A stretch of DNA of 64,000 bases from Trichosphaerium sp. ATCC 40318 (GCA_038496445.1 JALMLS010000466.1:620001-684000); one strand, 5' to 3'. Positions 33,915 through 58,522 are shown, counted from the first letter of the stretch. The notes: generated by a model not told the origin, from the letters alone. Program-made: numbers and translations.

Positions 33915-36502
33915 ATGGGTAATGGACTCACTAAAAAGGGTGCTTCTGGTCCGACACCTGTGGTGGACCTTACAAACGGGAAAAGCTTAGACAAACTAAT
34001 CCAAGAGGCAAAGAAGAACGGCACTCTAAAAAATATAGAACGATTGGATTTATCACGTCAAGAGCTAAATGAGTTGCCTCCGCAAATAGGCAAACTAGTG
34101 AACCTGCAGATCCTCAACATCTACGACAATAACCTCAAAAGCCTTCCCCCAGAATTAGGTACGTCAAAATAGCGTCTTTGTGTTAAACCATGTTATTTTT
34201 TGCACCCTATTTTGCAATACAGCCTCGTAATAACAGCGAGGGTTAAATACTCCAAAATTTGCCGCCTTTTCACGAATTTGACCGCTACCGTGCTAATCGG
34301 TTGAAGATCGGCAAAGTACCGTTTTTTCACTTGCTAGTTAACGGAAATACACTTTTAAAAATAAATTTACGCTTACGAGCGTACAATCAACCAATTGTAA
34401 AAATCTAAATTTGTTTATGGCTTCCTTTTTGTGAAAGGCTCTGTTCTTTGTGACTGCTGGCCTTCACAATTTCACCTCAAAAGAATTGAACGCAAAAAAA
34501 AAGCCCCAAAAGCAACAGAAAAACAATACACGTTTTATCGATCTATCGATCGCTATAAGTATAATTTTCGCGCGCTAAACAATAACTTACAGGTAAATTG
34601 ACTGGATTGCTCGCACTCGGTCTCAATGAAAACTCAATTGCGGAGTTACCTGCAGCTGTTGGGAAGCTAAAGTCATTGACACTGCTCGACTGCCGTTTTA
34701 ACAAGTTGATGGAAGTGCCTAAAGAACTGGGGCAATTGACAAACCTACAAAAGCTGTTTTTACGCTTTAACAAAATTGGTGCGAACCCGAGAATTGCAAA
34801 AAAAACTCCTCAAAAAAACCTCTTAGCAATTCCTATTTCGGTTTTTTGGTTGTTTTGTTTTTGACCTCTTTTTATTGGTTTCTGTTTCTTACACCTTTTT
34901 AAGAGGAAGTTGATGACGTAATTGGAGAACTCTCATCTCTAGAGATTCTCTCAATGCGCAACAATAAAGTACGAAAAGTAACTGAGTACGTATTTTCCTA
35001 ATAACTCACGTTATTTAAAACCCCGCGCCCTTGTTGGCTTTATTTTCGCTTGATTCGAAAAAGAGAAAAAAAAAACGCTTTGGACGCCGCAAAAAAATTC
35101 TTGAAAGCACTGAATCAGTTTACCTAACGTTTTAACTTAGCGCGCTGGGCAAATTATCTAAACTGTTGGTATTGGATTTTCAACATAATTCTATTGTTGA
35201 TTTTCCTTCTGTTAAAACGCTTGTCAACCTCACAACTTTGGATCTACAGTATAATACTATGACAGAAATGCCTGATGGTGTCTGTTCTTTGGTCAATTTG
35301 AAACACCTTCATCTTAAGTTCAACCAAATTGCAGTTGTACCAAAGGATCTTGGAAACCTTACTTGCCTTGAGGAATTTGATATGGAGGGTAATCGCTTGA
35401 CTGACTTACCAGACAGTCTCACTAAACTAAAAAATTTGAAAAAACTATACGTAAACCGTAACCACTTTAAGGTACGTTCTTCATAAATTTTACGATGGGA
35501 TTTTTGTCAAGCAGAAACGAGTAGGGGTTTTTTTTAGAAAACTCGTGTATAATTTTTATTTATTTTTATGTTTGTTGTTTACGTATTGATTTGTTTTATT
35601 TAGACATTACCGTCGTGTATACCGTCCATAATGTCAATAGAAGAGCTTTTCTTACACGACAACCAAATTGCAGATTGTAGGTCTGTTGGCAAATTAACTA
35701 AATTGAGGTACGTCTTTAGGCGTCTAATATGTAGTGGTGGTTTTTATTTACAACTTTTAGGACGTTAAATTTGTCTGGTAATAGTATAACAGATATTCCT
35801 TCAGAAATAGCACAATTGAAATTATTACGTGACCTAGATATTGGATCAAATAGTCTATCGTCGCTAGAGCCTTTACATCCATTTGAGGTGCGCGTTAAAG
35901 TGATCTTTTTTAGTTTGTCCGTTTTCGCTGTATTCTTGATATTTTGTTTTCTAATGTTGTCTAGGATCTCGGTGCCTTACAAGTGCTTAATGCTAGCGGT
36001 AATTATTTGAAGCAAGTGCCAGGTACAGTGACCACAAAATTTTTCGATTTGTTTTTTTTCCTTTATAGCGCCAACAAACCCAAAATCGCTGTTTTACTTG
36101 AGTTTCTCGTGTTTACTAACTTTACAAGATTCTATTGGAAATCTACCGCACTTGGAAAAGTTGTTCTTGTCCGAGAATGAGCTTGAGAGATTAAACCCTG
36201 CTATTGGACGTCTTACAGCGCTTATGGAGCTTAACCTTGATGAAAATGTTCTTACAGAGTTACCACCAGAGATTGGGCAATTGTGCAGCTTAGAAGTGCT
36301 GAATTTCAACCAAAACGAACTTAACGACTTGCCTAACGAAATTTATTTGCTTCCTTTGAAGATGTTTGGTATTGATGACAATCCACTTGAAGGTATACCT
36401 TCGCATGTTACTGAGGCTGGATCGCAAGAAGTGTTTGATCTTTTGGGCCAACGCCTTCGAGATCAGCAAGAACAGAACAGGAAAAAGAAGAAAAAGAACT
36501 AA
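33915..36502 (+). CDS. Leucine-rich repeat protein (SHOC2/RSU1-like), probably N-myristoylated, basic C-terminus
   Basis: Starts MGNGLT; many LxxLxLxxNxLxxLPxxIG repeats across the exons. Confidence 0.88.
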
Positions 36503-36959
36503 AGATATTGTTTATATCTCTTTATTAAAAAAAAGTCAGTCAATGTCAATACAAGAAACAAAAGAAAAAAAAATGCAAAAAAATCGACAAAAAAAAAACC
36601 AATTAACAATTCAAACACTTGGAGGATGGAGACTGCTTTTTTTTTTTCTTACTTACTTCAAAAAAACAACCCCTGTGCTAATTTATGTCGCACTTTTTAC
36701 GACTCTGTGTAAAATAGATGTCTATAAGATTGTCAGTGTATCTGGTTTTTTGTATCATGTATGATGACACTACAAAAAAAAATTTGTCACCAACGCGTTA
36801 AATAAAAAAACACGTGTTTATTAATATGTATTTTTGTTCTCGAACAACATTTGAAAGCTTATTTTTTTTTAGTCAAAGTTGGTGTATCACTGCTTTTTTT
36901 TTAATTTGTTTGCGACGTTGGACTTTTTGGTCATGGTGCTTGGATTGTAGGAAGGTATT

Positions 36960-40895: not shown

Positions 40896-42930
<2,035 letters not shown>

Positions 42931-43274
42931 TAATCATCTGAATAATCTCAGTGGAGCTTAAACATGTGACTCTTTCAATAAATATTTAACTTGATAAAAA
43001 AACCTTCGGAATTTCAGTTTTCTCTTGTAAACGTCGTTCACTTTACACCTACCCGTGTTCCACTATAACACGTTGTGGGAGTACGGGTGTTAACTATATT
43101 GTCTTCGGCGTACTGTATGAATGCTGTAGCTTAATCACACTGACAAAGCTTACCTATCTCTAAGAGACTTTTTGGTTTGGTCGTTTGAAAAAATGTTATT
43201 GTATTCATCGTGCAAGCTTGTTGATATTCGTTTTTTGTTTGCTCCCACAATTGTTTTAGTTTATGCACAACTTA

Positions 43275-43817: not shown

Positions 43818-44413
43818 TACTTAATACACCTACCACCCCATTAGTAAAACTTAATAAAAAAATGTACTACAATAAGTTAAGTACCATTACTTACACACAT
43901 AATAACACTAATAGCAGAAAACTAAAAATAGAAATAAAAACCAGCTTGTTTATTTAAGTGAGAATACAATCACGCATTTGTACTTTAATACCAGCAATAA
44001 TACAAGAATGTCCACGGCATTGGCCATTTCTCTTACACCATCTTCTTGAACAGTTAACTTTACCAGGCTCCAAGACAATAAAACTGTAATGTATATTAAA
44101 GAACCAGTTTTGTGTAGTCACAAGGTGGAAATCTTTGATACCAGCTCAAAGATTTGGAGAAAACTCAAGTTATTTGCTAACTCGCATGGGCTTCGCTGAG
44201 CCATTAAAGCAACTGGTAAACTATTAATCTTATTGTTCAATAACCTTGCGATAGTCATCTTAACATAAAACGCCTCAATAAGAGTTAGTGATTATTGACC
44301 TACAACACGTTGTAAATAGATGAAGGTACACGTTGTAATTTGTTTTAACTTCACAATTCTAACTCCAAAACAAGCAACAAATACAATCTGTCATTTGTGG
44401 TAAGTAACGGAAC

Positions 44414-47400
44414 TTAGGATTTTTTTGCAGGTGTGAGAATAAACGAAAAAGTACCTTGCATCACCATTTGCATCAAATTAATTGAGTTCAACGTTGTCCA
44501 AAGCCATCCATTATCGGCAGAAATATCAACCATGGCTTGTAGGATACGTACAGATTGATCAAGTACTGACTTTGTATCAGTGTAGTAATCAGAGATTGGT
44601 AACTGTTCGCTTGCAAAATGTGCTTGGAGCAGCAAAGCAGCTTTAGTATGAGGGCTTTCAAGAGTAAGCATATCAACATCCCAAGGAACTGCATTAGCTA
44701 GAATCTCATTGAGCTTCTCTTCATTATGACGAACAGGAAGTTCAGCATATTCTGGAGCATCTGAAAGCGTCCTCAATAGATCCTAGTAGTAGCGTTCAAT
44801 TAGTCGTTTTTTTTTCTGATTTGTTTTTTTTTGTCTTTTTCGTACCTCTACAGTAGAGTCTTCATCAATCTCGTTATCGAATAACTGTACAGTGGTATAT
44901 TGTAGATAATAATAAGCAGCAATTCGGCCAATTGTAGTGGGCTCAACATCAAAATCATTTTCTATTTCAATACATCCTGCCATCTCCAAGTCTTGGAAAG
45001 TATCATCGATTAGGTCGGATAAGAATTGATTAATAGCTTCTAATTTGACATCTTCAAGTTCATAGTATGTAGGATTCTTTAATAGACGTCTGAAAAAGAA
45101 CGTCCATGTAGCATAATCTATACCATCTTGTTTACTCTTGATTGTACCAGATACAACCTCAGCATTAACGTGATCATGTAAGCATTCACGTAAGCTTGAT
45201 TCAACAGGGAAAGGTTCATAGAGGAACTTTTTGTAAAAGCTCTTCTTCTCGTCTTGTACCATAATCACGGCGAGACCTAAAAATTGGATTAAAGTTTAAC
45301 CTTTGTTGACTTTGAACGCCTTTTTGTTGGTGTTTGGGGTTGTAGAGAACCACATTTATTACTTTTATAGAAGGTACCTTGGTGATCGAATTGAGGACGA
45401 CCTGCACGACCCATCATTTGAAGAATATCAGTGATAGGCATATCAGTATATCTCTTCATCTTTGGATCAAAAAATTCTGTTCCTTTGATGATAACAAGAT
45501 GCGCAGGTAGATTCACACCCCAAGCAAGAGTCGATGTAGATACAAGAAGTTGTATCCATCCTTTAGCAAAAGCGTCTTCAACATGACTCTAAAAGACGAA
45601 GAAAGTAAGCAACCAAACACAAGCTATTGAACAAAAAAAAGAAAAAAACAAAACTCGTACTCTGTCTCCTTTATCAAGACCGGCGTGATGGAGTCCGATA
45701 CCGAACGACAATGAATGTCTTAAGCTCGAGTCTTTGATTTTATCCAACATGAGCTCAAAGTATGGCACTTCGTCATCTTCAACGTGAAGGAACTGTCGAG
45801 GCATTTCGTCAGCGGCTGCAAGACTAATAATATCAACAGCTGTCAAACGTGTTTGCCTTCTTGAAGAAACGAATATGAGGACTGGTTTTCTTGCACTCAT
45901 TGTTCTAATCGCAGCATATGCAGGTTTGTTCATCGTAGCCATTCTCGGGCAATAGAATTTGCCAGCGTAGCCTTGGATGTGTACTTCAAGTGGTACAGGA
46001 CGGACAGATGGTCTGAAGTTGAATAAACCGACTGTGTAGTCAATGCCAAGCCAGTCTGCAAGATCTACAGCGTTCGCTAGAGCTGTTGATAGACCAACAA
46101 TACGTATAGGTGTATTTGTTTGAGAAGAAATGTATCTCATACGAGAAACAATCTAATTAGAGTAAATACAACAATCACGTGCTTGGAAAAAAAAAAAAGA
46201 GTTTTTTGCTTAGCGTACAACTTCAAGAATAGGTCCTCTGTCTTCTCCAAGGAGATGTATCTCATCAATAACTAGTAAAGCGACGTCTTTAACATAACTA
46301 GAATACAATTCAATATTTTACTTGAGCAATTTGTAGTACTGGGTTGTACCTTCTGTTTTGCCAACTACGTGAGATACCATCCCATTTTTCAGGTGTTGTA
46401 ATTACAATATCAGCAGCCTTTAAAGCGCGAATATCAGGCGTGTAATCTCCAGTCAGCTCGAGAGTACTCTTGCCGATCTTGGTAAACTTTTTCCACTCTT
46501 TAACACGCTCTCTGACAATAGCCTTCATAGGAGCAATGTATATTACCTTCACAAACAAAGTAAGTAACAACAGAAACAACCAAAGTCTTGACTCACTTTC
46601 TTGCCTGGCTGGTCTCGGAATAATCTTAGCATAGCAATTTCTGCTACAATAGTCTTTCCTGAACCAGTAGGGGCTCCCATTAGAACATTTTCTGATGTAT
46701 GATACAAAGTGTGGAATGTCTAAGCAAAAATAAGCTCACTTTGTTAACGCAAGCTAGAAGTGCTGAGGAGAGTATTTTCCTCTGCTGGTTTACTGTGCGA
46801 CGTGCCTGTGTTTGGATAGGATTAAAGTGTGAGAAAGGGTAGATGGCTTCAAACTTTGGGTTATGCAACGACTTGATTGGTAGAGGTTGCAAGTTGAGAA
46901 GAGGTGTATGAGGTGGATATTTTTCAGGTAAGATGAGATGTTGAAATGACAAAGGAATCATCTCTTCACAACCAAGCCAACGATCAGAAATAGCGTGGAT
47001 ATAATAATTAGAAGGCATAGGATCAGTGAATATTGGAATAACAAATGTAAGTTTCTGAGGTTCATTAACTTGTTTCTGATGAAGCAAAAAGTATTCGCTG
47101 TGGTATATATGTTCGTTATCAGCATCCTCTACCCAAATCCAGAATGGTTGTCCAGTACCTTTAAAACAGAAGTCAGTACAAAAGACACGATTACAATGAG
47201 GCTATAATATGAAGGCTTACCGTGAACGCGTTCATCCCACTCAAATAGAGCCTCAATAGTAAGTTGTACACGTAATACAGTACGTGTAATAGGTTGTACA
47301 GTAGCTGTCAATTCCAATGTTGGAAACTTACGTACAGCACTAACAACACGTTGACCAGATGTTTTATTATGGTGGATAAGAGCGCTTATATCTGAAGCTG

Positions 47401-50400
47401 TCATATCACGTAACTTATCTAAACCCACCTTAAAGAAAAAGTCAGAAAAAAATAGGATTATGTAAGTTTACCTTTTTCTCTTCTAGTCGCTTAAGAACTG
47501 CTTCCGGAAGTGAATGCATTTGCCTTAGTGGATGATGGTATGTCCATAGTTGATGATCAACCATTTTACAGAAATTAAGAAGCTTAGAGCCAAGGATAGT
47601 AAAATTTTGCTTAATAGCAATCTCGAACATTGCTCTGAATATCCTACCAGCATTTTGTGCAACGTAGTTACAATCAGAAACCAGGGAGAATGTTTTAATA
47701 GACCACCGAGAAATAAACGCCTGAATAAGAACGTCTAAAACATCATTAGAGTCGAGCATGTAGCGTGGGAAAGTAGGTAGGTACTTGTTTTGCCAGTTTT
47801 ATCTTCAGAGCCTCCTTTTACACTTAAAGGACAACAATAAGGTGAATCAGCTTCTATCATTTCATCAAGCTCTTTCAGTTCGTCATCTCTCAGATTTACA
47901 TTATCAAACTCTGAGCACTAAAGAAGAAAGCTTGTTAGTTTTTGGAGAAGGTAAAGGAGGGTTATAATGCGTACTCTTGATACTGCTGTGATGACATCAA
48001 CATCTGACATTGTACCCTTTATTGATTCATTAAACATTCTCATTGTTTCATGCTTAATGTAGTAATGAGAGGCAATACGACCCAAATCAGTGGAGTAAAG
48101 ATTTCCTGATTTTTCATCAAATCGAATCATTTTGCATTCATCCAGAGTCTTACAGGCTCTGACAACGTCCTCTGATCTTCTGTTTATTAAAGCAGGATCA
48201 TTCGTCTACATAAAATACTTAGCCACAACACACAAAAGGCAACAGCTGAGCTAGAAAAGAAATAAAAGGGTTGATGTGACTTACCTTTTCATTGAATGAG
48301 ATACCATACGCAAGCGCATTCTTCTTCATCCGTGTGTACAAGTAAGTGTATGATAACCACTGTACTGCTTCACGAACGCTCGATACTGTACCCAAAACAA
48401 TCTCTGCATTGAGTTGATCTTCAACACGTTTGATAAATTGACTTTCAATCGGTAACTGGTGATTAAGAAGTCTTAGATAATGTTTGAGCTTATCATGTTC
48501 TGTTATAATAACAGCGTCACCAGACGTATCATACTGTGGACGACCAGCACGACCAAAAATCTGCATGACATCAAGCATACCAAGGTCTACAAACTGACCA
48601 GCCTCAGAGTTATACAACTGAGTTCCTTTGATTATTACTGTATGAGCTGGAAGATTCACACCCCAAGCAAGAGTTGCAGTACAGCATAGCACTTTAATCA
48701 TACCCTCGCGGAACAATTTCTCGACTTGAGTACGATCCTTCCTTAGCATACCAGCGTGATGGCAACCGAATCCTCCTCTGAAGAGTTCCTTCAAAGCCCT
48801 ATCTCTTGATTTGTCTACAGACTTCGCAGCAAGTCTGTAACGTTGTGTAGCTTCAGGCATGAACGCCTTTCCGTCTCCTGATTCTTTAGCCATCTCGATC
48901 ATAGTTTTCGCTGTTCCTGCAGTATCTTTTCTTGAGTGAACGAAGATAAGCACTTGGTTTCCTTTTTTAACAGACTCCAGTGCTTTTTCATAAGCGACTT
49001 CAACTTGTCTGCTCTTAATGTCTAGAATATTCTTTCCTTTTACACCAATGTACGTTTGATCAAGAGGTACAGGTCTGTATGATGAATCAAAGTAGAAACA
49101 TCCCTTAACTGGGTTTACACGCAAGAACTCTGCAACATCTTGGTAATTTGGTAAAGTAGCAGAAAGACCAACAATACGAATCATTGTTTGTGTTTGCTCA
49201 ACCTGTAAACAAAGAATAAGTACAGCTCAGAATAAAACTCGTGTGTGTTAGTCTAATTGACGTACAAGCCTTAGAGTTCTTGCTACGATACTCTCAATAA
49301 CAGGTCCTCTGTCTTCATGCAAAAGATGGACTTCATCAATAATAAGAAGCTTAACAACTGATGTTAAAGCAATATCAGTGCTTTTTCTTGTTATAACATC
49401 CCATTTTTCTGGTGTTGTAACAATGACTTGTGTTGCCGTTAATTCTTTCTTTGTAAGCTGCATATCACCAGTACATTCCTTAACAACTATACCCAAAGGT
49501 CCTAAACGCTTAGAAAAACTACGTGTCATCTCAGCAGCGAGAGCTTTCATTGGAGCAACGTATATTATTTTGAAAGCTTCTTTATGAAGTATACCACCTC
49601 GAATGTTCTTGCCAATTTCATGAAGCATAGTCATAACTGCTACGTTTGTTTTACCAGCACCAGTAGGCGCACAAATAAGCAAGTTCTCATTTGTCTTATA
49701 AGCTGAGTGATAGACTTTGGATTGAATTCTGTTAAGTCGCTCATATCCTTGAAAAGCAAGTTGAGCGAACTCTTCAAATTCTGATATTGGTATCAAGTCT
49801 TCTTTTTTAAGAGGTGGTGGTTGTTTTGCTGGAATATAAACGGATTCGTATTCCTTGAGGTTCGTGCGTATAGCGCCTTAATTAAAGTTAATAAAAATCA
49901 CAAAAAGAAAAAGTAATATTAAACTGATGAACGAATATATTCCGCTTACCATCAGGTGTACCACCATTTTCTGCTAGTCTAGGAGCAGCGGCAAGGTGAT
50001 AAAATGGGAGCGGTTCTTTTGGTGCAACCATATAATTATCCCCAGCAAGATTTCTAAAAAACAATGGGTTACAACAATTAAAACCAAAGGAAACTTTTTG
50101 ACACAAAAAAAAAAGACGAACCCTTGTGCTTGTCCGTAGGAATTTTTACCCTTTCTACGTCGCTGGTTTTTCTTTTCTAGTTTTGATAGGAGCTTATCTG
50201 TCTTTGTTACAATAGTGACCTACACTCATTGTCAAAAATCAACCCATAAAACTGCTTCGTACACCTGGGCCAAAATCTGGACCTCTTGTTGGTGCGCCAC
50301 GCAAATTCAAGCTGACAAGCTCATATCTATGTGAAATCATTGTACGTATAAACCCAATATGTTGAGGCCCAAGCAGATCCATTAAATTCTCGCTTACTTG

Positions 50401-51563
50401 ACGATCAGTTTGTGAACTTTGTATGAGCTAATATAAAGATAAGAACGATCTAATAAATAATCTACAAAAATGTTACCTGGTTAATAGCAGAGGCAAGCAT
50501 GACTGGATCTTCTAGAGGAGACTTCATACCGTTACTTTCTAAAATACTAATGAAGCGCATGCACTGCATACGCAACCAATCAGAGTCCACAACAGAACCA
50601 TCGTCATCAAAAGTCAAGTATGTGTCTTCTTCTTGTTCAGGTTCTATTCCAGCTGCAATGATAGCTTGAGCATCTCCATATGACAATGTAGGTGTTATAT
50701 TACTGAATAAACATGAGTACACCAATCAAACAAAGAAATAGAGACAAAGTGGAAAAAAACCGTATTTTCTGAAAAGTGGAATTTAACGTACAAAGATGTG
50801 TCCCATGAGAAAGCTAGATTATCTCCATACAGCTTTCCACGCTTTTTAGGAAGTACACTAGATGCCTCAACACCTTGGGAAGTGACCCAATCAGCAAGAT
50901 TCTGAGCGTCTTGTTTTAGCGCTTTTACTGTTTGTTGTTTTATTATATTCGTCAAATAACGTGGTAGAGAAGTTCTAAGAGACGATGACGTGTAAGATTT
51001 CTTGTTTTGTAGACAAACTCGTTAAGAGAATTGTGCGAATTTGTTTGGATTTTGCAGTGATTGTTGTAAGGTGTAAAGAGAAAAAAATGAGCTAAAACGT
51101 ACTCCTTCGAACCGCTTACAACGTCGTTGTATAGAAAATAAGCTAAGGACTGTATTTCTTCAATAGAAATATCTGTATCTCCCAAGGCTGTTCTTATAGC
51201 GTTGGCGTACTGTCCCCATAGATCTTTTGCTGTTTTGAGCTCTTTACGCTTGGACTGATTGCCTATAGAATAATTACGCAATTTTTAATTTTAAACCACT
51301 CACCTTCTACTATATTAGTGAAGGACTTCAAACTGAGCGTCTTTTTGCTCGTTCCAGCTGCTCTAAAAAAATAATCAGTTTAATTATCAAAACTATGCTA
51401 GTACTTGTTTATACGCAGTTTTTCAAGCGCTTCGCTCTGTGTTTTAAATAACACCTCTTCACTTTCTGTTTTAACATCTTTGCTAAGACAAACGCGCAAT
51501 AGCTCTGTTAACTGCGTACTCTATGCACTGTTATACTGTAGAATAAAAATTATAGCTTACCAT
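44414..51563 (-). CDS. ASCC3: ASCC3/Slh1 Ski2-like double-cassette helicase (3' end apparently incomplete)
   Basis: Two cassettes: [21 protein letters not shown] and [21 protein letters not shown]; [27 protein letters not shown]; Sec63 domains. The first exon is probably a lone ATG at 51563. Confidence 0.92.
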
Positions 51564-51680
51564 GTTTGTAGACCCTTGACGGGACGCAAGCAGAGATTTT
51601 TGTTGAAGCTGATTGACTTTTCGGTTTTTTCGTTGTTTTACATCACACTTTTGACATTTTGTGGTACACAGGTGTCTCCA

Positions 51681-53427
51681 ATGGCTAATATGCGTAATCG
51701 CAAGGTACATAGACTTATTTCGAGAAATACACGCTAAACTATGCAAAAGGGAGGCAACGACGAAGAGCTAGCGCAAACTACTTCAGCGTTGAGACTTGTT
51801 TCCGCTCCTACACGGCTCACTGGTACATTTTTACGAATTTTTTTGTACAGGATCCGTTAAATTGAAGAATAGATGCCAATTGCCTCAAAAGAGAGCCTGT
51901 CGTTTATATCAATGACAAAGAATTAAAACCAGATGATGACGGCTTTGATTTTAAGTCATATCTTGACACGGCACTGTTTATCGCCTTGGTACGCGTCCAC
52001 TACGCTAAACAAGCTATAAAAACCGTGTACTAAATTCTCGACTACTAAAACTGCAGATATTCTCTGGCGTTTACTGCATGTGGCTAGCACACAAGGATGC
52101 AGACGAGTCCTTCAAGTTTGACGAATTCTCAGGCGGTTTACTTTTCAATGCAGGATTTACTCCTTGGGTTTTATCCATTTGGGCAGTTCTTACTGGTGCT
52201 AGAGCGTTTGTAAAGCTAAACTTGATAAAGGTAAGCATCAAATCACAATTTTATTGTTTTTTTGAAAACTTCAAGTTTCGGTTGAGCAAGACGTTAACTT
52301 TGTATTTCAAGGTCGCTACTTCATCTATTCTTATAGCAGGAGGTGTTTATTTTCTAACTGTAGATTGGGAGAACACAGATTTGCTTGAACTAGTTGGTAC
52401 GCATTACAAACACAAAAACCAGCCAAGTTTTGTTGACATTTTTTAGGACCTGCTTTGTTTGAGATTGGTGCACTTTTCTTCGTTTCCAAGTTCTTCTTCT
52501 TGGTACGTTAAGAGTCTCTTTAATATAGTAGTAAACAAACTCACCTAAAATAGGTTGAAGATGATGAGATTAGGCTTGAGAGATTGGAAGAACAACTAGA
52601 AATTGCCTTGCAATCACCAGGTATAGTTAATCTGCTTGATTTTGTTTAACCAAATACCACTAGGGATGGGTATGGCTATGAGCTATTACTTTAACTTTGT
52701 ACTACCTACAGCCGCCAATCTGAGGTAACTCTTTGACTTCGAACATAAAAATCATTTACACTTTTCCAAGGAAACCAAATGAAGAAAATGGTGTTACTCC
52801 GATTGAGTTCGAAGTATCTCGATCAAATTACGAGGACTACACGTGCCAAAATGCAAAACTATACGTATTCATACCACGTGATCTAGATGGTTCTGATATG
52901 AAACAAACACTACGAAAGATTTCTAGTAGTGGTCTTGTCTCTCAAGGTACCAAAAAAAAAAGAAATACCTGACTTTGCATCTGAATGACGTTTTAGGCCG
53001 TCCTAAGCCAAAGAAAGGACAAGAAACACATCGTCCAATGTTTACGTACTTTCTGCATTCTGATAGTAATGCAAAGACTGTCAGCGGTATTTTCGATTTA
53101 CCTACAATAATATCAAGTTGTTGGGATAGACAACAAGCACAAACTGAAGAACTTCCTGTTGACATTTCACAAGAGATAAGAGACTTTCAAAATACACTTC
53201 TTCGTCTTGTAAAAGCGAATCCACTCACAGCTGATGTCGTACAGGTAAACACAAAAAACTTCAAAAAGAATCACGTGATTTATTTCTATGTTTTCGAAAA
53301 AAAAAAAAGACTGACTTTTATCTCGTAGCTTGTAAGCATTCCACCTACTCCATTTAATGTCAAATCAGTTCAAGATATTTATTTCGAAGTAAACAAATCT
53401 TCAGTATTGGTTGTAGGCAAACAATAA
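51681..53427 (+). CDS. STING: Four-transmembrane STING with bacterial-type cyclic dinucleotide-binding domain (blSTING-like)
   Basis: The spliced protein has 4 hydrophobic segments, then SPGMGMAMSYYFNFVLP, KLYVFIPRDL, HRPMFTY, IFDLPTIISS and EIRDFQNTLLRLV. Alternative start at 51741. Confidence 0.8.
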
Positions 53428-53495
53428 AAATGACAGTAAGATACAGTGATAAAAAGAAGCCTAATAGTTTTCCAATTTCTTTTTTTTCTTCCTTT

Positions 53496-55484
53496 TTAAT
53501 CATCAATGTCAGCAAGTTTGAATACTTGTTTTAGTAGTTCACTAGCAATATGTGCTTTCTTTGGGTCCGATATTCCAAACTCTGTTGTAACGCCATTGTA
53601 ATCAAGTCTTACAGAAAGACCAGGCCTAAAAGGTGCAAACTTTACACGTCTATCGACAAATGTTGATGTTCTTGATTCTTCTTCCTGGCTCACTGTTTCA
53701 AGAACTTCTTTTTGTCTAAACCTAACCCTCCTATCGGCTATCATCACCTTTTCTGATTGAGCCAAATTTTTCTTAGGAGCTCCTTTTCTAAATGCAGGAG
53801 GCTCTGGGCCAGCACCATATTGTGCGCTTGATCTAGGTGATCTCGCTTCTCTGCCACGATTTGGCGGTTCATTAGATTCGCTCTTGCTCTTAACATGTTC
53901 GCGTGACTAATACGTTAGATGAACTGTTAGCAAGGTACATGATGGCAATGACGCACTCTTTTGGCTCTACTGCCTAGACCATGTTCTGTAGATACGCCAT
54001 TAACGTCTGGTGGCGACCATGGTTTCAAAGAGATACCTATAGTTGTGTTTAAACTAGACCAAAAAAAAGAAAATAGCGCTTAACTTTTATCAAGCTTGAA
54101 AAAACGTCTCGGCCTTCTTTAAGGAGGATAGCATGTGACTCATGTGATACCCAATTAGAGCATGCTAGGTGGTAGTGATTCGGGAATCCTAGTTTATTAG
54201 CATGAAGAGCTAGAACGATGTCAGAATGCAGATCAAATCTATTGTCAAATACCTAACTCCAAATCTCCTTTAGAAAGAGGATCTTTGTCACCAGCTTGTG
54301 TAGTAAGTATAGGTATATCTGGAAACACTTCGTATAATTCACTTATAAAGTGGTAACAATTTAAATCGCCAGATCCTGATTTGGCAATATTTCCTTGCCA
54401 TCCAGAACTCCCTTGCAACTTTGTTAACATTAAAAAGTCGAAAAAATCTGTCTTACCATGTGCCTTTGCTGCTTGCTTTACTTTCGTCATGGCGCGATCA
54501 ACAACAACGCCTCTTATTTTGGCGTTATATTCTACAGCTACTTTCCTAGCAACATAAGCAGCAACACCAGCGCCCATTGAGTATCCATGCAAGATTATAT
54601 CGCATGGACGAAAGTACTAAATACTTTTCCTTAGTTCGCCATCGAACGAATTTTGTGTACCTTTCCTTCATGGTTTGTTATCGTTAACAACCCACACCGA
54701 TAGAATTCGATGGCATCTTCAAGAAGCATTGACGTATGAAGATCTAGACAAGTCAGTACTGAGTTTATAAATAAGCATACCTTTTGTTTTGACTTGAGTG
54801 CTTGCTCCAAACCCACGGTAATCAAGTGCTAGTACCTTGCATCTAAATGAGACTTGGCCACGTTTTAAAACGTCTAACGCACGTGGCAACCATGCTGAAC
54901 GTAAAAATACGCAATATCCGTCATAAACTGAACAGAAGAACCACAAGAACCTGACATTGTAATTACCAGCACGCCAACACTCTCTACCACAAAAGTCACA
55001 ACTCCTGTTTCTCGATTTCATTTACAATTCGATACCTTTGGTGTTTTTTGGCGAATAAATACGTCCCCTGAGCATACTGCTACCTCGTGAATACCTCCTC
55101 CTCGGAAAGTGCTCCACAACCTTTAAAACAAAAAAAACAATAAATAAACGAGGAATATTTGCTGTTAGTGATCACTTGCACTGCAAAAAGCGTACATTAA
55201 TACAAGCGTGTTTGGCCTAAACGGTGTGGTCAATTAATAATTTTACTACAACTTTACAACGATCACGCTACCACGTGACATTATTACAAATCACGTGCCG
55301 CAGTATGAATCTTCTCACCGTCGCTTCCAACGTAAAAGTCCCAATACAAATCATCTTTATTGTCTCTACGCTCTTTACTACTCCCAAAGAGTGCTGCACT
55401 AGCCTTTGGTACAATTTTATGCAACTTTGGCGCTTTTAATGTCACTGTAAGTGCGTGAAGCTCTTCATCACCAGAAAAAGACAT
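53496..55484 (-). CDS. Alpha/beta hydrolase (GYSMG nucleophile elbow), MARTX ABH-effector-like
   Basis: VLALDYRGFGAS, LLEDAIEFY, DIILHGYSMGAGVAA, GVVVDRAM, DKDPL, SHES; low-complexity C-terminal extension. Confidence 0.8.
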
Positions 55485-55692
55485 TAATGTGCGTTTATTG
55501 TTGATCACGAGTTACAGAACAAGAGCCATAAGAAAGAATAGTTTTTGCTTGTCAAAAACGTTTAATCAGGTACACCGACTTCCATGTATCAGTTGACGAC
55601 ACCACACATGTTGAATGGTTTACAGTACTCCATACAGCTTGTAACGATGTATTATTGGTAACGGGTATGTGCGTTCCACATTGTGGAATGGG

Positions 55693-57120: not shown

Positions 57121-57236
57121 CAATTTGTTTCTCACGCGCGTTAAGGGCGGTTACATAAACGATTATTGTTTTGGTGAACTGTTGTACCACTTCTGACCAC
57201 TTTGACACGTTTTACAATTTTCGGCTTTCTACAGAC

Positions 57237-58522
57237 ATGGGCGGCCTGTGCTGTTGTGGATCTAAAAAGGAGAAGCATGGCCTTCTTGATCCAAGGCTTA
57301 TAGAGACAGCAGATAGGCCAGCGTCTCCATACAAAAGAAATAATCGTGGACCTGCTGTAAAGTTTGTCGAGCGCGATTCTGGAGCGTATTCATACGTAGT
57401 ACCCGAGAATATTGAAAGCATGTGGAAACAAGATGTTAGAGCTATTTGGAAGCGACCATATGAGCAACTACCTATCCACGTAGACCTACCACGGCTTATT
57501 CGTAAAATTCGTGTTTATGAAGACGATTGTTTATTATTTGGTAATCCCAAAGGAGAGCTAGACATAGATTCGATGATATATCAATTCTTGGGTACGTTTA
57601 GGTAATTGATTCAAAATAGAAGTATTTTCTTTTAGCGTTACTATACTTACAATACGCTTAAGAGCTCATGAGTAAGCGTCTTGAAGATGTAGAAGCGCTT
57701 TCATTCGTTCAAAACGAATTTAAACAATACGTTAAAGAACAAGGACCAATCGGTACGAGTTAGCATACATAAAGAAACCTACGTAGCGTAGCAAAAACGG
57801 AGGTAGAACCAAAAAAGAGTAAATAACATTCCTCTTTCTCCAGATTGCTCTAGCACCACCTCTACAATTTTCTACGCGTATTTTAATATTAATTTAAGGT
57901 TCGGACGTTGCTGGGCAGTTTAAAGTGTTTTTGAGCGCTCTTAATGACCATTGTGGTAAAGAAACTAAGCTTATACGCATGTTAAAGGTATTTAAAAGCT
58001 TTGTTATAGTTTTCGTAAGAGTTGGGCGAAAAATCAAAATGTCATTTTTGTTTGACACTTTGTTTCTAACTGTTTTTTTCGCCCTTAGTTTTGCCATCAA
58101 AAAGTCATTTTTTCGCCGTTCTATATGCTTAAGGCTGTTCTTTGTCCAACTGTTGGACGTTTCAAGGATAAGAGAGGATCTTGGTTCATAGATATTCACC
58201 TTGACAAGCGTATAAAGTGCGTTATTTAACAAACAATTTTGATTCTTCATTTTGACATTTACGACTTTGCGCACGCATGAGTTTCTAAAGTACTCCATTT
58301 AGGATTTCCCACAGTAAAATACAAGAATCAAGTCCCTATGAAGATATAACAAGAAGAGACTATGAATTTAAATGGACACTTGCACTAGAAATTTCAAGAA
58401 AAAAATTTAACGTCAAATCAATCGCTGTACATATTTCTGATACTGTTATAAGTGATAAGTTATCGCCTTCTAGACGCATAGAACTTGAAGATACATTTGA
58501 AGCAAACAGAATAATAGTATAA
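57237..58522 (+). CDS. Acylated membrane protein with probable GlfB C-terminal-like domain
   Basis: Starts MGGLCCCGS (myristoyl + palmitoyl signal); QLPIHVDLPR, FKDKRGSWFIDI, YEFKWTL. The domain assignment is from recalled similarity to amoebozoan GlfB-like proteins. Confidence 0.55.

Follow-up and report, generated by a model that had tools for sequence, protein, structure and literature searches.

An intron-rich blSTING gene in the amoeba Trichosphaerium sp. ATCC 40318

The gene at positions 51681-53427 on the forward strand of a 64-kb stretch of the genome of the marine amoeba Trichosphaerium sp. Am-I-7 wt (ATCC 40318; GCA_038496445.1, JALMLS010000466.1:620001-684000; the whole stretch of 64,000 nucleotides is hereafter called the window, and positions are counted from its first letter) is a genuine, spliced and transcribed nuclear gene coding for a blSTING. 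The encoded protein has four predicted transmembrane (TM) helices followed by a STING ligand-binding domain of the prokaryotic sequence type and, by analogy with characterised relatives, is probably a dimeric, stand-alone cytosolic sensor of bacterial 3'3'-cyclic di-GMP (3'3'-c-di-GMP). The sequence-only reading that had pointed to this locus was correct, but the finding is already known, as the exact protein was published in 2023 by Culbertson and Levin (PLoS Biol; PMC10732462), who searched EukProt and named the class bacteria-like STING (blSTING).

Our gene model agrees at every residue from position 12 up to its C-terminus with the entries P007899 and P009999 of EP00028_Trichosphaerium_sp_Am-I-7-wt in the Fig 3C FASTA file of that study, and three motif strings of 9-15 residues matched exactly in its supplementary files, in whose alignments the Trichosphaerium entry is P014227. 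The hmmscan reported there assigns the Trichosphaerium protein to PF20300 (30 bits, E 4.4e-7, residues 189-307), and the Newick trees place it among the amoebozoan blSTINGs, the other amoebozoans of the Fig 3C set being Filamoeba, Cavostelium and Stenamoeba. It had been stated from the sequence that bacteria-like TM-STINGs are reported in microbial eukaryotes but largely uncharacterised; the first part stands, whereas the second understated the case, the exact protein being included in that very report and c-di-GMP binding having been measured for two members of the class.

As a member of the class, with the same four N-terminal helices and PF20300-type domain, the protein itself has no feature that sets it apart from the published class. 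New from the window are only the exon structure with ten confirmed introns, the first 11 residues, the gene neighbours and the finding of no adjacent synthase gene. The eight residues encoded by exon 1 (MANMRNRK) are absent from the FASTA file of the published study, which was based on transcriptomes, while the joint between exons 1 and 2 is present in two sequencing runs, so the genome completes the N-terminus. The locus adds little beyond establishing that the Trichosphaerium member is an intron-rich, expressed nuclear gene and not bacterial contamination. The draft genome paper (Tekle et al. 2023, PMC10521059; 70.9 Mb, GC content 37.69%) does not mention STING.

Gene structure and transcript evidence

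The gene model was obtained by reading the three forward frames and joining coding blocks at GT..AG boundaries. It gives a coding sequence (CDS) of 11 exons and 1179 nucleotides (nt), corresponding to 392 codons and a stop, and the boundaries proposed in the sequence-only reading are exactly its start and stop codons. Exons 2 to 11 below are supported by the model and by spliced contigs, together with any further evidence given in brackets.

51681..53427, +, complete blSTING CDS (model, splice joints in contigs of three studies, collinear with homologues)
51681..51704, +, exon 1, residues 1-8 with the start codon (joint 51701>51747 in runs X1 and X4)
51750..51822, +, exon 2
51873..51988, +, exon 3, cytosolic part at the N-terminus, then the start of TM1
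52057..52230, +, exon 4, remainder of TM1, TM2 and start of TM3
52312..52396, +, exon 5, TM3 and start of TM4
52447..52502, +, exon 6, TM4, ending in the conserved SKFFFL (family conservation)
52554..52620, +, exon 7, connector helix, EDDE..LERLE..L..A..SPG (AlphaFold model of a relative)
52664..52724, +, exon 8, first helix of the ligand-binding domain, GMAMSYYFNFVLPT (profile alignment)
52771..52946, +, exon 9, strands and a helix belonging to the domain, LYVFIPRDLDGSD
52997..53244, +, exon 10, beta-strand lid, D-x-P-T and the long helix EIRDFQNTL (homologue alignments)
53329..53427, +, exon 11, final strand (VSIP), terminal helix and stop codon (fold alignment)

The ten GT-AG introns measure 45, 50, 68, 81, 50, 51, 43, 46, 50 and 84 nt and all start with GTA. 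The exons have a GC content of 40% and the introns of 31%, in a window that is uniform at 35-40%, which fits the genome average (PMC10521059).

Assembled contigs of the four public runs that cover the gene, from three independent studies, were aligned to positions 51500-53600. In these contigs all ten introns are removed exactly at the predicted GT..AG positions, with nine of the ten joints present in at least three runs and that of intron 1 in two. The records of the runs bear no RNA label, but sequences that lack every one of the ten introns, where the genomic copy has them, are as expected of spliced transcripts. Only two variants distinguish the runs, 52170 T>A (Val) and 53046 G>A (Thr), both synonymous and at third codon positions. 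The exact joints and the exclusively synonymous variation show that the gene is real, intact and expressed, and every exon joint predicted from the sequence is present in transcript-like contigs of the three studies. The long residence in the genome that had been read from the introns is a reasonable deduction to which no dated event can be attached, while the ten introns themselves are all transcript-confirmed.

These data bear directly on the possibility that the gene is an artefact, i.e. a contaminating bacterial sequence, a pseudogene or an open reading frame (ORF) arisen by chance. The prokaryotic type of the domain could be expected of a contaminant, and bacterial contamination did have to be removed from the assembly (PMC10521059). 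However, the ten introns are of the same short GT-AG style as those of neighbouring genes, the genes on either side are themselves eukaryotic and rich in introns, the GC content of the window is uniform, and the protein is strongly conserved with eukaryotic relatives, leaving an artefact with a negligible probability. Contamination and a pseudogene in particular are ruled out by the introns, the spliced contigs in three studies, the intact frame and the synonymous-only variants.

Architecture, family and predicted fold

A hydropathy scan identified four hydrophobic segments of TM length, at about residues 63-83, 98-117, 126-146 and 157-177, upstream of the ligand-binding domain.

51962..52556, +, four-helix TM domain, about residues 63-177, split by introns 3-6 (hydropathy; four long helices in models of a 49%-identical relative)
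52611..53427, +, STING ligand-binding domain, about residues 196-392, split by introns 7-10 (PF20300, profile matches in the Protein Data Bank (PDB), fold matches)

The spliced translation contains the motifs GMAMSYYFNFVLP (with N209-F210), LYVFIP (249), HRPMF (289), FDLPT (310) and EIRDFQNTL (337), and the C-terminus lies about 30 residues past the last strand of the domain, leaving no long tail. The architecture described from the sequence alone, four TM segments followed by the STING motifs and no long C-terminal tail, is therefore present in full. Searched with Pfam, ten full-length relatives gave no match to TIR or to the STING TM family.

The blSTING relatives form a rare family, since an exhaustive phmmer search with exon 10 recovered just 30 relatives among 1.84 billion representative proteins. 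The Trichosphaerium protein itself was not found in these large protein collections, the top match to exon 10 being 60% identical. The spliced protein is collinear with its relatives all the way from TM1 to the C-terminus, without a gap at exon junctions, and BLASTP gave E-values down to 2e-108, the highest identities being 50% (P0037) and 49% (P0031, E 1.5e-107); the choanoflagellate-type relatives P0004 and P0011 share about 35-42% identity with it.

The closeness of the motifs to bacterial CBASS STINGs more than to animal STING, claimed from the sequence, was borne out by several comparisons. Hidden Markov model searches placed all ten full-length relatives in PF20300 (prok_STING; E 5e-9 to 7.5e-4), whereas PF15009 (animal STING, TMEM173) was touched by one of the ten, at an E-value of 0.054, below threshold; single exons of the gene gave no Pfam match, such fragments being too short to judge the whole protein. 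A family profile, built with the exon pieces of the window included, retrieved from the PDB the bacterial STINGs 8hwj (2.3e-8), 9lmq (8e-8), 8hwi (1.6e-6) and 7ebd, 7ebl and 6wt4 (about 1e-4), the sole animal STING being that of oyster (8ydn), at E 0.11 or, when a larger alignment was used, 0.0056. In these alignments the NF, D-x-P-T and E-x-x-D-F-x-N-x-L motifs correspond column for column with those of bacterial Cap12 STINGs. Exon 10 alone had as its top PDB match the same Cap12 STING (8hwj), at a non-significant E-value of 0.68, in an alignment that pairs D-x-P-T and E-x-R-x-F-x-x-T-L. These comparisons support the reading that what follows the four TM helices is a STING ligand-binding domain, prokaryotic in its type of sequence.

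The blSTING family is also predicted to have the STING fold. A check by AlphaFold and Foldseek was run on a proxy, the closest full-length relative P0031 (362 residues, 49% identical), with a 34-row family alignment. The model has a mean pLDDT of 84.3 and a pTM of 0.75, and contains four long helices along with a connector helix and an alpha/beta domain, the latter mostly above pLDDT 90; in a Foldseek search of the PDB its best 50 matches were all STING, with probability 1.00. VIA-align gave Z-scores of 12.9-14.2 against the eight best bacterial STINGs (root-mean-square deviation 2.9-3.5 A over 141-163 residues), 12.0-12.4 against further bacterial entries and 11.5-12.8 against animal ligand-binding domains.

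Bacterial CBASS STING effectors of the Cap12 TIR-STING and TM-STING kinds (e.g. 8hwj, 7un8/7un9, 7ebd, 6wt4) are thus the closest solved structures both by sequence and by fold. The Trichosphaerium protein differs from them in lacking a TIR domain, in having four TM helices where bacterial TM-STINGs have two, in being encoded by a gene with ten introns and no operon-like CD-NTase found in the window, in carrying a Met two residues after the lid Arg, and in an extra C-terminal helix that, in the P0031 model, aligns only with animal STINGs. With animal STING (TMEM173, PF15009) it shares the order of four TM helices, connector and ligand-binding domain, the fold and the terminal helix of the domain, whereas the sequence similarity is marginal, the C-terminal tail for TBK1/IRF3 is missing, and the expected ligand would be 3'3'-c-di-GMP and not 2'3'-cyclic GMP-AMP (2'3'-cGAMP).

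Ligand pocket and proposed function

Class I bacterial STINGs recognise c-di-GMP by stacking Phe, guanine, Tyr and Arg in four layers (Ko et al. 2022, PMC8748872). In PcSTING, R233 of the lid reads O6 and N7 of the guanine and D252 reads N2, the lid motif being R-X-(Y/F) (PMC8748872). In a profile alignment to PcSTING (7ebd), F210 of the Trichosphaerium protein corresponds to F171, R290 to R233, D311 to D252, Y295 to H238 and M292 to Y235, with F293 lying one residue further on.

52693..52698, +, N209-F210; F210 is the counterpart of the base-stacking F171 of PcSTING (alignment to 7ebd)
53029..53043, +, H289-R290-P291-M292-F293, lid motif; R290 is the counterpart of the guanine-reading R233 (alignment to 7ebd)
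53092..53106, +, F310-D311-L312-P313-T314; D311 is the counterpart of the N2-reading D252 of PcSTING and D169 of FsSTING (alignments)
53173..53193, +, E337-I-R-D-F-Q-N343, part of the long helix; lines up with E-x-R-N-F-K-T in bacterial Cap12 STING (alignments)

The stacking Phe, the lid Arg and the guanine-N2-reading Asp of the c-di-GMP-binding class, kept in bacterial CBASS STINGs, are all three present in the Trichosphaerium protein. At each of N209, F210, H289, R290, P291, F293, D311, P313 and T314, no fewer than 90% of 29 relatives have the same residue.

A precedent for the ligand comes from a preprint by Li et al. (2025, PMC12424679) on two purified proteins of the blSTING group, from the choanoflagellates Diaphanoeca grandis (DgSTING) and Stephanoeca diplocostata (SdSTING), both species being devoid of cGLR. 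The two proteins bind 3'3'-c-di-GMP (Kd 0.59 and 1.75 uM, respectively) and do not bind 2'3'-cGAMP (PMC12424679). The NF, HRPMF, D-x-PT and DF-x-N motifs of the Trichosphaerium protein recur in the blSTINGs that the 2023 alignment contains for the two species; we take these aligned sequences to be the proteins that were assayed, the text of the preprint giving no accession. The likeness extends to the genomic setting, these species lacking cGLR and no synthase gene having been seen in the Trichosphaerium window, across a divide between Opisthokonta and Amoebozoa. Since the pocket motifs are common to the blSTINGs of the assayed species, our best inference is that the Trichosphaerium blSTING senses 3'3'-c-di-GMP.

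The search for a synthase was a Pfam scan of the whole window, covering 98 open frames of at least 90 residues on both strands and leaving shorter exons outside. It returned 34 family entries (19 from one half of the window, 15 from the second, some repeated across halves), and none of the 98 frames matched CD-NTase, Mab-21, OAS, SMODS, NTP_transf_2 or GGDEF. The sequence-only reading had likewise seen no CD-NTase in the window, which holds for frames of this length.

With no CD-NTase or diguanylate cyclase found nearby, in an amoeba that eats bacteria and is grown on them as sole food (PMC10521059), the protein most likely works on its own, sensing bacterial c-di-GMP that has entered the cytosol. 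As a dimer it would bind 3'3'-c-di-GMP in a cleft covered by the beta-strand lid, like the two choanoflagellate blSTINGs. More speculatively, closure of the lid could lead to oligomerisation, and the output could pass through the membrane domain, for example as membrane remodelling of the autophagy type or as an ion leak; in the absence of a kinase-recruiting tail, a TIR or another enzyme domain, the signal would have to exit by oligomerisation and the membrane domain.

Several points weigh against this proposal. The output step is pure inference, and the membrane domain modelled alone (pLDDT 75.6) gave no informative structural match in the PDB, the best hit having an E-value of 2 and human STING ranking 35th at 3.9, a result that does not speak for a difference from the animal TM domain. 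The ligand precedent consists of two choanoflagellate proteins, none of them amoebozoan, so that the analogy spans supergroups. The lid reads R-P-M-F and not R-X-(Y/F), with Met at the stacking position, and the geometry of binding may differ; R-P-M-F is, however, also found in the aligned blSTINGs of the two c-di-GMP-binding choanoflagellate species, suggesting that the bacterial rule cannot be transferred unchanged. The fold was predicted on a 49%-identical proxy, and the lead of bacterial over animal structures, though real, is small, about 1.5-2 Z units. Moreover, the C-terminal helix of P0031 aligns with animal STINGs (to residue 362), whereas the alignments to bacterial STINGs mostly end at about 342-344, which, with the bacterial-like sequence, points to a domain having one animal-like structural feature.

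Alternatively, the protein could be the receptor of an endogenous signal, a CD-NTase or OAS-family enzyme elsewhere in the genome making a cyclic di- or oligonucleotide upon infection, for instance by giant viruses, after the model of CBASS or of the animal or choanoflagellate cGLR-STING pathways. OAS-type enzymes, however, make linear 2'-5' oligoadenylates, which to our knowledge are not known as ligands of STING. In favour of an endogenous signal are the exceptional gene traffic of the Trichosphaerium genome with giant viruses (PMC10521059) and the pairing of bacterial STINGs, always with a cognate CD-NTase (PMC8748872). Against it, no such enzyme was found in the 64-kb window, whereas choanoflagellate cGLR and STING genes lie adjacent in pairs, and Trichosphaerium occurs only in the STING-linked supplements of PMC10732462 (trees, alignments, domain table and FASTA), being absent from the CD-NTase files inspected. 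Species with a blSTING are typically without CD-NTases (PMC10732462), and both blSTINGs assayed so far come from cGLR-less species and bind the bacterial signal (PMC12424679). We therefore regard an endogenous signal as rather unlikely. A home-made axis in its full form, in which the amoeba's own OAS/CD-NTase-like enzyme makes a nucleotide read by the blSTING against giant viruses, is a long shot; if true, synthase-STING pathways, so far known from animals, choanoflagellates and bacteria, would gain their first example elsewhere.

The protein could also serve no defence at all, reading bacterial c-di-GMP as a food or habitat cue, or else an endogenous signal in control of the life cycle. Such a role would have a counterpart in Dictyostelium, in which c-di-GMP is a developmental signal. 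It would also suit a bacterivorous amoeba with a complicated polymorphic life cycle (PMC10521059). Yet no GGDEF cyclase is present among the scanned frames of the window, and the characterised STINGs of bacteria, choanoflagellates and animals all act in defence, making a non-immune receptor very unlikely. The stand-alone sensor of bacterial c-di-GMP is retained as the probable function. The question raised by the blSTINGs is what role STING has in a cell without a cyclic-dinucleotide synthase, and Trichosphaerium, culturable on bacteria and with a draft genome, offers a usable amoebozoan system for the tests of binding and of cell response asked for in the literature.

Rotifer relatives and neighbouring genes

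Among the relatives are blSTINGs of bdelloid rotifers (Rotaria spp. and Didymodactylos carnosus; P0005, P0033, P0035, P0038, P0048 and P0049), with four TM helices, a PF20300-type domain and about 40% identity to the Trichosphaerium protein. Rotifers are mentioned neither by Culbertson and Levin (PMC10732462) nor by Li et al. (PMC12424679). In Rotaria sp. Silwood2 (GCA_905329745.1, CAJNSZ010000009.1, L001:6001-7125) the gene is one uninterrupted ORF of 374 codons on a 2.49-Mb contig, and adjoins an ankyrin-ADP-ribosyltransferase gene. The lack of introns in this copy, in an animal known to take up genes, suggests that the rotifer blSTING was acquired horizontally. The Logan copy of P0031 is an uninterrupted ORF too, on a contig that may be genomic or a transcript, and these uninterrupted ORFs offer no intron positions to compare with those of the Trichosphaerium gene.

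Upstream of the blSTING gene and running away from it (44400-51560, reverse strand) lies an intron-rich gene for a two-cassette Brr2/Ski2-like helicase, with Pfam matches to DEAD, Helicase_C, Sec63 (six frames) and SNRNP200_wHTH (two frames). Its 5' end is within a few hundred bases of the blSTING start, and a shared promoter region is possible; the contigs aligned to 51500-53600 have no depth at 51500-51641.

The downstream neighbour (53496-55500, reverse strand) is convergent and shows a GYSMG nucleophile elbow of the alpha/beta-hydrolase type in the ORF 54245-54592, although its three largest ORFs have no Pfam match at E 0.01. No functional tie to the blSTING gene was seen, and this neighbour is not repeated at the rotifer locus. 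A contig of run X1 (2091 nt) extends from the blSTING coding region through its 3' end and past 53600 into the convergent neighbour, indicating that the two 3' ends are very close or overlapping, which is not proof of one transcript.

Some further features were observed elsewhere in the window. At 42145-42950, open frames of 200-250 residues overlap within one stretch of 800 bases, on both strands and in several frames. Both the GC skew (0.175) and the AT skew (0.189) of the window reach their maximum in this part, and the segment resembles a low-complexity or repeat-coding stretch. An ORF at 57171-57605 (forward strand) has a short match of 41 residues to PF24929 (GlfB-like C-terminal domain; E 1e-7). 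Finally, a cluster of leucine-rich-repeat exons was identified at 34586-36761 (forward strand), with four open frames and a match to LRR_8 at E 1.7e-20.

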